64,000 bases of DNA, from IMG/VR virus record IMGVR_UViG_3300045999_008996, positions 158,564-222,563 of that record. One strand, 5' to 3'. Positions within the stretch are counted from its first letter, which is position 1. Each line of letters starts with the position of its first letter. Shown one piece after another: positions 1,860 to 26,747 of this stretch. The notes under the pieces were generated by a model. That model was given only the letters and a program-made list of their open reading frames with translations. It was not told the DNA's origin and did no database searches. Position numbers and translations under genes: made by a program.

Positions 1860-2318
1860 TTATGAAAACCAAAGTTTACCTTCTGCAACTCTTCTTCTCT
1901 TCAATCCCGCTTCCACACTTGTTCCTGGGTTATGATAAAGATATAAAGCATCAGGTACCTTAGTCCATTCTTTATTTTTAAGAACTCTGGTTATGGTATT
2001 AAAATTGGAAGACCCGTAAAAACCAGCACCAAGATTATAAGCAAAAGAAAGAAGTGCTCCTTTTTGATTTTCATTCATTTCACTCCAGTAAGGTATTCTT
2101 TGTAGTGATGGCAAAAATCTATTCTTTAAATCAAATTCAAGTAGAGTGTCTGCATACTTTTGAGTAATCACTCTACCTATTTTGAAGGGTGTCCCATCAA
2201 AGTCTTTAGTGCTTCCCCAACCAATTGTAATCGGCGGTCCTTTTGTTAAAGGATCTGGATAAGCATTTAAATGACATCCTTCAAACTCTTTGATTAAATT
2301 AATGCCAACCAACGGCAC
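1860..2318 (-). CDS. GH24 phage lysozyme domain, probably the -1 frame extension of the upstream ORF
   Basis: IKEFEGCHLNAYPDP...TIGWG catalytic motif; GLKRRRVAE C-terminus. Confidence 0.9.
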   Translation of the reverse strand: MPLVGINLIKEFEGCHLNAYPDPLTKGPPITIGWGSTKDFDGTPFKIGRVITQKYADTLLEFDLKNRFLPSLQRIPYWSEMNENQKGALLSFAYNLGAGFYGSSNFNTITRVLKNKEWTKVPDALYLYHNPGTSVEAGLKRRRVAEGKLWFS

Positions 2319-2350
2319 TTCATTGGCATTATTAATGTTAGTTGGCGCTT

Positions 2351-19884: not shown

Positions 19885-19892
19885 AAGTTATT

Positions 19893-19996
19893 CAGGCTCG
19901 CCACCAATTCTTTGACTGGAAATTGGAAACCAGGCGGGAGAGAGTCCCATCCGCACCAGCAAGAATTTTTATTGTGCCTTATCTTGCGGGCACCAG
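19893..19996 (-). ncRNA. wcaG-like structured RNA (two pseudoknots, UGGYG repeats)
   Basis: GTGCC/GGCAC with GCAAGA/TCTTGC; CTGG/CCAG with CCAATT/AATTGG; TGGTG and TGGCG; upstream of a WcaG-family gene. Confidence 0.7.
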
Positions 19997-21323: not shown

Positions 21324-21376
21324 TGTTTTGAATGTTGACCTTAGTATTATAAGGGTTTGACAGGTAATCTGTCAAG

Positions 21377-21449
21377 TGCTCCTTGCGTGGATCGAACACG
21401 CCTCAGGCGAATTATGAGTTCGCTGCATTCACCAGATTGCTAAAGGAGC
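21377..21449 (-). tRNA. tRNA-Met or Ile2 (CAT)
   Basis: Cloverleaf; GCGAA-CTCATAA-TTCGC. Confidence 0.85.
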
Positions 21450-21453
21450 AAGG

Positions 21454-21541
21454 TACGAGTGGGTGGATTCGAACCACCTCAAAGCCGCTAATCTGGCGGA
21501 AAGGCGTTATAAGTGCCCTCTGACTACCAAGTCTCACTCGC
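21454..21541 (-). tRNA. Atypical 88-nt tRNA, anticodon TAT (Ile), long variable arm, 4-nt D loop
   Basis: GCGAGTG/CACTCGT acceptor; GACT-TGGT-AGTC; loop CTTATAA; GGTGG-TTCGAAT-CCACC. Confidence 0.7.
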
Positions 21542-21579
21542 TTGAACCAGGTCTATTATAGAGGACCTGGAACTCTATG

Positions 21580-21810
21580 TCAAGAACCTTCTTCGTGGTC
21601 AGTGTGTATTCGTATCATATCATCATCCACTTTAGATTCTACTGCAAACTTTATAGTTTCGTTATATGGAACAATCACTGCGTTTCTTTCTCCATCAGTA
21701 ATAATAAATGATTCGCCGTTCTCTACTCTTTGTATTAGATTGTCAAAATCTACTTGAAACTCTTGAACTGTAAATTTTTGGAGATCTGAAAGTTCTGGAT
21801 ACATTTTCAT
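21580..21810 (-). CDS. Phd/YefM antitoxin-like protein
   Basis: FTVQEFQVDFDNLIQRVENGESFIITDGERNAVIVP matches the Phd N-terminal pattern. Confidence 0.6.
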   Translation of the reverse strand: MKMYPELSDLQKFTVQEFQVDFDNLIQRVENGESFIITDGERNAVIVPYNETIKFAVESKVDDDMIRIHTDHEEGS

Positions 21811-21826
21811 AAAGTGAAGTTTATGA

Positions 21827-21898
21827 TCGGGGTGAGAGGGATCGAACCTCTGTCTTCTTGCTCCCAAAGCAAGCCGTCTACCGCTGACTTACACCCCG
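21827..21898 (-). tRNA. tRNA-Pro (TGG)
   Basis: CTTGC-TTTGGGA-GCAAG. Confidence 0.9.
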
Positions 21899-22015
21899 TT
21901 ATTTGTTTCTGTGTATAAACATAATACCAGCAAATGGTACGATTGTCAACCCACATCCACAAAGAAAAAGAAAGAAGGGACTTGCTGCTAATGTTTCAAC
22001 AAGATGAAAAATCAT
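21899..22015 (-). CDS. 38-aa membrane peptide containing the tRNA-Pro promoter
   Basis: MIFHLVETLAASPFFLFLCGCGLTIVPFAGIMFIHRNK; internal TTGACA-17-TATTAT. Confidence 0.5.
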   Translation of the reverse strand: MIFHLVETLAASPFFLFLCGCGLTIVPFAGIMFIHRNK

Positions 22016-26665: not shown

Positions 26666-26747
26666 GAGACCTCTCTGTTTGTGCTTCTATGAGAGGCATG
26701 AGAGGGGTGAGACTTATATGAGGTTTGGACCCTCACTGCTCATATGA
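26666..26747 (-). ncRNA. Pseudoknotted leader RNA 5' of tRNA-Arg
   Basis: ATATGAG/CTCATAT with GTGAG/CTCAC; CCTCTC/GAGAGG; TTGACA-17-TACAAT at 26750-26778. Confidence 0.45.

Follow-up and report, generated by a model that had tools for sequence, protein, structure and literature searches.

A DNA segment of 64,000 nucleotides (referred to here as the window) from a 222,563 bp T4-like cyanomyovirus genome with a G+C content of 36.3% contains an element at positions 21454 to 21541 that resembles a tRNA with a UAU anticodon but does not conform to any standard tRNA class. This raises the questions of whether it is a genuine tRNA and, if so, which amino acid it carries to AUA codons and what purpose is served by its extra hairpin, the loop of which presents GAU, the anticodon of the main isoleucine tRNA. 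AUA is the one sense codon that bacteria normally read only after an essential base modification, lysidine, which is made by TilS. We find that the element is a real and widely conserved phage tRNA gene, and that it probably enables an AT-rich phage to read the rare AUA codon as isoleucine using a body plan unlike that of any textbook tRNA.

A non-canonical tRNA(UAU) gene in a cyanomyovirus genome

The gene is 88 nt long and lies on the minus strand, with the 5' end of the RNA at 21541 and the discriminator A73 at 21454. The 5' strand of the acceptor stem (GCGAGUG, 21535–21541) pairs with 21455–21461 (CACUCGU), with a G·U pair at 1-72, and is followed by a single linker A (21534) and a compact D arm (GACU-UGGU-AGUC, 21522–21533) with a 4 bp stem and a 4-nt loop. 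After a further single A, the anticodon arm (hairpin 1, 21500–21520) has stem strands GAGGGCA and CGCCUUU and the loop CUUAUAA, with the UAU anticodon at 21511–21509; the stem has 7 bp in the family, although in this copy the top pair (31·39) is an A·C mismatch. The extra or 'variable' arm (hairpin 2, CCGC-CAGAUUA-GCGG, 21485–21499) follows, with GAU at 21493–21491, and is separated by a CUUUGA linker (21479–21484) from the T arm (GGUGG-UUCGAAU-CCACC, 21462–21478). The minimum-free-energy fold is exactly this five-helix cloverleaf, with an energy of -32.2 kcal/mol, 41% of the ensemble, and a z score of -2.8 against shuffled sequences. Every element listed in the initial annotation, including the one-nucleotide linker, the extended anticodon stem and a promoter of its own, is present, and its observation is therefore confirmed; the only difference in emphasis concerns the A·C mismatch.

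A σ70-type promoter (TTGACA-17-TATAAT) matching the consensus at 12 of 12 positions is located at 21555–21583 on the minus strand, its -10 hexamer ending 13 nt before the tRNA 5' end, which leaves a leader of about 7 nt, and the promoter region aligns with that of Synechococcus phage S-SRM01. A tRNA(CAU) gene (21376–21449, minus strand) lies 4 nt downstream, probably in the same transcription unit, and is followed by another perfect promoter; it is called by ARAGORN, scores 52.5 bits with the Rfam tRNA model, and directly follows the long-arm tRNA in 37 of 104 loci. ARAGORN finds 20 tRNA genes in the window and 22 in the whole genome, which also includes nrdA/B, gp43, gp41 and UvsW.

ARAGORN, which had been proposed as a test of the initial annotation, does not call the 88-nt gene, and the Rfam tRNA model (RF00005) gives no hit at 21454–21541 even at E ≤ 10. 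The only Rfam hit, at the gathering threshold or at E ≤ 10, is to tRNA-Sec (RF01852) with 27.2 bits, below its gathering score of 47. The mismatch is why ARAGORN misses this copy while calling most relatives tRNA-Ile(tat) of 88–92 nt, and the failures in the window reflect the mismatch and the unusual arms rather than the absence of a cloverleaf. A covariance model of the element (R1) scores it at 108.3 bits, the only such hit in the window. The features expected of a working tRNA are present, namely a 7 bp acceptor stem, a 5 bp T stem with a UUCRANY loop, a 7-nt anticodon loop with U33 and a purine at position 37, and a discriminator followed by CCA, the last being encoded in the subfamilies whose neighboring tRNAs encode it.

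Conservation and covariation of the fold

Full-length, unannotated relatives were found by BLAST in Synechococcus phages S-SRM01 and S-SKS1. To determine how widespread the element is, we scanned viral contigs with the 16-nt D-arm word GAGACTTGGTAGTCAG, which hit at least 119 contigs. All 119 loci are homologues and share the same architecture, apart from four copies cut by a contig end and two 5'-half fragments (loci L055 and L075). Homolog alignment had been named as a check on the element, and we aligned 59 distinct full-length copies (alignment A1), in which 99.6% of pair cells are paired and 15 of 28 pairs change on both sides. The covariation score is 0.448, compared with 0.125 for shuffled columns (0 of 500 shuffles reach the observed value) and 0.05–0.10 for slid partners. 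Double changes are seen in the acceptor stem (5 of 7 pairs), the anticodon stem (4 of 7), the extra stem (2 of 5) and the T stem (4 of 5). The D stem is invariant in A1, but this word was the search seed; clade members found with a different pattern carry GUGU-UGGU-ACAC, GAAC-AGGU-GUUC or GACU-RGGU-AGUC, which are compensatory variants.

In A1, A8, A21, U33, the UAU anticodon, A37 and A73 are invariant in all 59 copies, as are the three basal G·U, R-U and G·U pairs of the anticodon stem (the middle of which changes from A-U to C-G in a Nostoc copy) and UUGA preceding the T stem, and G1·U72 is present in 56 of 59. The extra-arm loop C-a-G-A-U-u-A, with its closing C-G pair, is invariant or nearly so, in a set that was chosen on the D arm only. 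A profile search with nhmmer found no additional divergent members in the loci collected, and missed a variant in S-CRM01 that covariance model R1 detects with 47 bits.

A wider superfamily with the same extra hairpin

The S-CRM01 variant has a normal 7-nt D loop and a 5 bp anticodon stem, but retains the extra arm (GCAC-CCGAUUA-GUGC), UAU, G1·U72 and A73. We scanned viral contigs for the extra-arm loop together with the T loop (GATTAG-N12-13-GTTCRANTCC), which returned about 70 further tRNA(UAU) genes, most with ordinary D arms such as GUUU-AAUGGUA-AAAC. In these, the hairpin (4 bp plus CAGAUUA) is followed by a 5-nt stretch that looks like an ordinary variable loop; 53 of 63 distinct copies have an encoded CCA, and A73 and G1·U72 predominate. 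Across the superfamily the hairpin has 4–5 bp and the loop C-N-G-A-U-U-A. Herelleviridae phages of Lactobacillus also carry it, annotated as a 91-nt tRNA-Ile in ENFP1 and unannotated in LpeD. The 4-nt D loop described as tRNA-Sec-like in the initial annotation is thus a true resemblance but a derived trait of one clade, comprising cyanophages and uncultured aquatic myoviruses distantly related to cyanophages and pelagiphage HTVC008M, whereas the hallmark of the family is the extra hairpin with its GAU loop, which the annotation did not single out.

In cellular assemblies most exact matches to the D-arm word are chance occurrences, and only 4 of 59 have the family architecture. Two of these are phage-like tRNA arrays binned into metagenome-assembled genomes, and two are lone copies in Nostoc genomes, among integrase, excisionase, HNH, ParB, AAA_21/DUF4435 and AbiEi-like genes. 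Only 2 of 151 Nostocaceae genomes sampled carry the tRNA, indicating that it is a mobile-element gene rather than a core cyanobacterial gene.

Genomic context and the meaning of AUA

The tRNA lies among other tRNA genes, in arrays of up to 33. In one array (L016) all 27 tRNAs, including this one, end in an encoded CCA, and the array contains one initiator-like CAU tRNA (C1·A72), one elongator-like CAU tRNA, Ile(GAU) and this tRNA, which is therefore the only candidate AUA decoder in a near-complete set. In phage S-SM2, the syntenic position between a phd-like gene and the same tRNA(CAU) is occupied by an ordinary 74-nt tRNA-Ile(UAU) (SSM2_186), also with G1·U72 and A73. Among loci chosen only by nrdA or gp43 homology, eight tRNA(UAU) genes are class I and one is long-armed, and the two forms look interchangeable. 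The tRNA(CAU) adjacent to the gene in the window may itself be a lysidine-type AUA decoder, as one relative is annotated tRNA-Ile2, which would make the long-arm tRNA partly redundant. We examined whether the tRNA(CAU) has conserved C4-G69 and C5-G68 pairs, which are TilS determinants; both are present in the window's copy but are not conserved across the family, and the idea was dropped.

There is a demand for AUA decoding, as ATA occurs at 13.1 per 1000 codons and constitutes 18% of Ile codons in this genome. For cyanophage S-CREM1 the published values are 16.6 per 1000 in the phage and 2.5 per 1000 in its Synechococcus host, which lacks a TAT tRNA (PMC9964418). To ask what ATA means, we aligned ORFs of this genome with ORFs of 283 related loci (2.7 Mb). 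At columns at least 90% conserved among relatives, ATA occurs at 8 of 322 Ile columns, 6 of 264 Val columns, 4 of 273 Thr columns, 1 of 530 Leu columns and 0 of 287 Ser columns. In a per-column control with all 61 sense codons, the consensus at ATA columns is Ile in 55%, followed by Val, Leu and Thr, and ATC gives 58% with the same order. ATA columns thus behave like those of ATC and ATT, with no sign of Leu or Ser recoding.

A probable lysidine-independent AUA-decoding tRNA-Ile

The interpretation offered in the initial annotation, which listed a TilS-independent AUA decoder, a mis-acylated allo-tRNA-like species and a decoy, is partly supported, with the evidence favoring the first. We consider the most plausible explanation to be a functional, lysidine-independent AUA-decoding tRNA-Ile of a conserved phage-borne architecture, with a probability of roughly 0.6. 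It has a 7/5 acceptor/T-stem branch, a compact D arm, an anticodon arm with the loop Y-U-UAU-A-N, a second hairpin with the loop C-N-GAU-U-A, and a 5–6-nt linker before the T arm. The gene, its fold, its conservation, its place in tRNA arrays and the Ile-like behavior of ATA codons are established by the analysis, whereas charging by isoleucyl-tRNA synthetase (IleRS), decoding on the ribosome and any role of the extra arm are inferences. In the proposed mechanism the tRNA would be transcribed from its own early-type σ70 promoter together with the downstream tRNA(CAU), processed like its neighbors, charged with isoleucine by the host IleRS using A73, a weak 1-72 pair and A35, U36 and A37, and would read AUA without lysidine and hence without TilS.

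The anticodon UAU with A37 and A73, and the Ile-like ATA profile, are those of an AUA-specific tRNA-Ile, but there are reasons for caution. No aminoacylation, modification or tRNA-seq data exist for it, and neither charging nor use by the ribosome was assayed. Expression had been named as a point on which the gene could fail, and the only evidence is from metatranscriptome contigs of relatives, which do not show ends, strand or level and could be carried-over DNA, so that expression is not proven. E. coli IleRS, which has Trp905, a residue conserved in species that have tilS, charges UAU tRNAs poorly, and an unmodified UAU anticodon also reads AUG on E. coli ribosomes (PMC3575796); a Nostoc genome carrying the element has the Trp (C-x-R-C-W) form of IleRS. 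The 7 bp anticodon stem, the 1-nt acceptor–D linker and the 4-nt D loop remove the canonical 8-14 and 15-48 tertiary pairs, so that normal performance on the ribosome is not guaranteed, and the window's copy has the A·C mismatch at 31·39.

The closest counterparts are bacterial tRNA-Ile(UAU), such as Mycoplasma mobile tRNAIle2 (PMC3575796), and class-I cyanophage tRNA-Ile(TAT), such as that of S-SM2. These share the UAU anticodon with U33 and A37, A73, and the presumed job of lysidine-independent AUA reading, but are ordinary 72–77-nt class-I tRNAs, whereas this one has a 15-nt extra hairpin with a conserved loop, a 7 bp anticodon stem, a 4-nt D loop and a single-nucleotide acceptor–D linker. 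We found no description of this architecture in literature searches or in reviews of non-canonical tRNAs, although these covered few subscription journals and are weak evidence of novelty, and some records already label members tRNA-Ile. The family is left unannotated in four of the five public isolate genomes inspected, so that phage tRNA censuses and codon-compensation studies undercount AUA decoders. A large and widespread family of phage tRNAs, in cyanophages, uncultured aquatic myoviruses, Lactobacillus phages and Nostoc mobile elements, appears to bypass the lysidine step with a non-standard body plan, showing how viruses re-engineer the translation apparatus.

Possible roles of the extra arm

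A tentative refinement of this explanation, which we regard as possible but not likely, is that the molecule has two anticodon-type arms, with hairpin 1 decoding AUA and hairpin 2 being a relocated or duplicated tRNA-Ile(GAU) anticodon arm. In this view, and as our preferred guess for the arm, it would present a GAU anticodon mimic that helps a Trp-type IleRS accept a tRNA whose U34 is a poor identity element; alternatively, it could be a second stacking partner for the D stem. GAU is invariant in the three central positions of the loop in A1, and hairpin 2 is followed by 5–6 nt and then the T stem, the spacing of an ordinary anticodon arm and variable loop. A few class-I phage tRNAs (L377:12129-12203, L410:1946-2021 and L368, designated by locus) have CCGAUUA as their only anticodon loop, those detected by ARAGORN being called Ile(gat), and global alignment of these with extra-arm tRNA(UAU) genes places a single gap of about 20 nt over the UAU hairpin and aligns the GAU hairpins, although this alignment is partly driven by the shared motif. 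Other extra-armed phage tRNAs in these loci (Asn, Trp, Cys, Thr, Pro, Glu and Arg) carry plain tetraloops such as GNRA or UUCG, and the conserved 7-nt loop is therefore special to this family. Trp-type IleRS also discriminates against U34 (PMC3575796), and the Nostoc host enzyme has Trp at that position. However, the geometry was not examined, and in a class-II-like fold a 4 bp arm at the core would not reach the IleRS anticodon pocket. The loop also lacks U33 and A37 (position '33' is A or C and position '37' is U), and t6A37 is a positive IleRS determinant in E. coli. Class-I tRNA(UAU) without the arm is commoner among close relatives, so the arm is not required, and the GAU match was noticed after the fact. 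If the hairpin does prove to be a synthetase handle, it would be a natural example of separating tRNA identity from decoding, functions normally read from one loop, with a bearing on tRNA evolution and use in orthogonal-tRNA engineering; the family also offers a direct test of how IleRS copes with a U34 anticodon.

The main alternative, although an unlikely one, is an anti-defense or decoy role, in which the RNA or its GAU hairpin exists mainly to resist or titrate a host tRNA-targeting nuclease or toxin. Phage tRNAs are reported to evade tRNA-cleaving defenses through anticodon-loop changes (PMC10264068, PMC11555353), and hairpin 2 looks like a tRNA-Ile(GAU) loop altered at positions 33 and 37, although here the decoding loop itself is canonical and the oddity is an added arm and a reduced D arm. 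A Phd-like antitoxin gene lies just upstream in S-SM2 and S-SKS1, and the Nostoc copies lie among AAA_21/DUF4435 and AbiEi-like genes. A decoy cannot be excluded for the extra arm, but nothing tested here requires it, and we identified no nuclease specific for tRNA-Ile(GAU). The invariant UAU/U33/A37 loop, A73, the encoded CCA and the position as sole AUA-decoder candidate in near-complete arrays are what a translating tRNA needs and a decoy does not.

Charging by LeuRS or SerRS through the long arm and A73, with partial recoding of AUA, is very unlikely, and the allo-tRNA-like option is not supported. A73 is the Leu discriminator, LeuRS and SerRS ignore anticodons, and phage tRNA-Leu(UAA) genes share G1·U72, A73 and even identical acceptor stems with some members. 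Nonetheless, ATA is almost absent from conserved Leu and Ser columns, the absence of G73 argues against Ser, and the D loop lacks the A14/R15 core that E. coli LeuRS reads. As in class II tRNAs (Ser, Leu and bacterial Tyr), there is a five-helix cloverleaf with a 7/5 branch and a base-paired, covarying arm between the anticodon and T arms, but the arm is short (4–5 bp), its loop is conserved in sequence, and its flanks are 0–4 nt and 5–6 nt, the latter compared with 1–2 nt before a class II T stem; on the arm alone, class II membership, which asks for a base-paired variable arm of more than 10 nt between positions 44 and 48 with short flanks, is left undecided, whereas the anticodon belongs to a class-I family and ATA is not used at Leu or Ser columns. 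The 4-nt D loop (UGGU), long extra arm and extended anticodon stem are shared with tRNA-Sec and allo-tRNAs, and allo-tRNAs often carry UAU. The element does not fit tRNA-Sec, which has an 8/5 branch in bacteria, a 6 bp D stem, a UCA anticodon and G73, nor the allo-tRNA definition of a 12 bp acceptor branch split 8/4 or 9/3 (PMC5389517), as both the 7 bp acceptor and 5 bp T stems are supported by compensatory changes and A8 faces C such that an eighth pair cannot form; it also occurs in phage tRNA arrays rather than acidobacterial or toxin-antitoxin contexts.

Excision of the extra segment to give a normal 70-odd-nt tRNA, or decay to a pseudogene, both raised in advance as grounds on which the initial reading would fall, can be all but dismissed in spite of the anticodon-stem mismatch and the half copies elsewhere (L055, L075 and L123:697-747), because both hairpins covary and their loops are conserved over dozens of lineages, river and freshwater metatranscriptome contigs from four studies carry the region in relatives unspliced with no joint inside 21454–21541, and no bulge-helix-bulge or group-I features are present.

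We also considered pairing of the extra-arm loop with the T loop, but this was rejected by inspection because T-loop variants do not covary with it. Lastly, we tested whether phages swap tRNA bodies, such that a long-arm UAU tRNA is paired with a short UAA tRNA and the reverse, and this was rejected, as the long-arm UAU co-occurs with long UAA in 30 loci and with short UAA in 19.

Neighbouring genes and promoters

A tRNA(CAU) gene is located 4 nt downstream of the candidate tRNA (window positions 21376-21449, minus strand) and has an unusual D arm (GCAA-UCUGGUGA-AUGC). This gene directly follows the long-arm tRNA in 37 of 104 loci, and its relatives are annotated variously as tRNA-Met, tRNA-Ile2 or tRNA-OTHER. 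It was not listed when the whole window was searched with Rfam, but it scores 52.5 bits when the search is run locally. Three σ70 consensus promoters, matching 11–12 of 12 positions, lie within 600 bp (21346-21375, 21555-21583 and 21921-21949, all on the minus strand), and each is positioned in front of a tRNA or a small ORF; in comparison, shuffled sequence gives 1.5 promoter-like sites of any quality in this stretch. The tRNA region is flanked by a wcaG RNA (19890-19995, minus strand; 83 bits) and an abiF RNA (26669-26705, minus strand; 41 bits), both of which have been reported in other cyanophages. Related river-water contigs from two metatranscriptome runs (X1 and X2) have the tRNA-Pro gene region (21822-21898) replaced by 81 unrelated letters, although the flanks remain 90–95% identical.

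HNH endonuclease genes and half copies of the tRNA

HNH endonuclease genes lie next to family members in S-CRM01, S-SRM01, LpeD and the Nostoc element (at L123:61-609, L002:830-1249, L451:529-659 and L332:779-1225, where L numbers designate individual loci). Half copies of the tRNA also occur, with 5' halves fused to other sequence in loci L055 and L075, and a 3' half at L123:697-747. This suggests that these are scars of homing or recombination at this gene.

Other unusual phage tRNAs

Genes for 'tRNA-Leu(UAA)' of class-I size (73–78 nt) and lacking a long variable arm were observed in the phage's own genome, outside the window (C1:129620-129694), and at locus L003 (901-977). These have G1·U72 and A73, and their acceptor stem, GCCCGUG, is identical to that of some long-arm UAU members. 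Bacterial tRNA-Leu is normally class II, and both long and short UAA forms occur among relatives. A further set of class-I phage tRNAs, at L377:12129-12203, L410:1946-2021 and L368 (about 2270-2345, minus strand), has the anticodon loop CCGAUUA, that is, GAU with C33 and U37; a pyrimidine other than U at position 33 together with a pyrimidine at position 37 is very unusual for a decoding tRNA. In addition, other phage tRNAs of normally class-I isoacceptors (Asn, Trp, Cys, Thr, Pro, Glu and Arg) carry extra arms capped by tetraloops and are 82–94 nt long (L377:11402-11495, L373:5801-5889, L400:307-394, L037:4532-4622, and at loci L442 and L417). Long extra arms seem to be a broader habit of these uncultured phage tRNA arrays.

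ATA at Val- and Thr-conserved columns

In the genome-wide comparison of codon columns, ATA is somewhat over-represented relative to the commoner Ile codons at strictly Val-conserved columns (6, against 4 for ATT) and at strictly Thr-conserved columns (4, with no ATT or ATC among the listed codons). This may simply reflect GTA→ATA and ACA→ATA transitions in an AT-rich genome, and the numbers are small.
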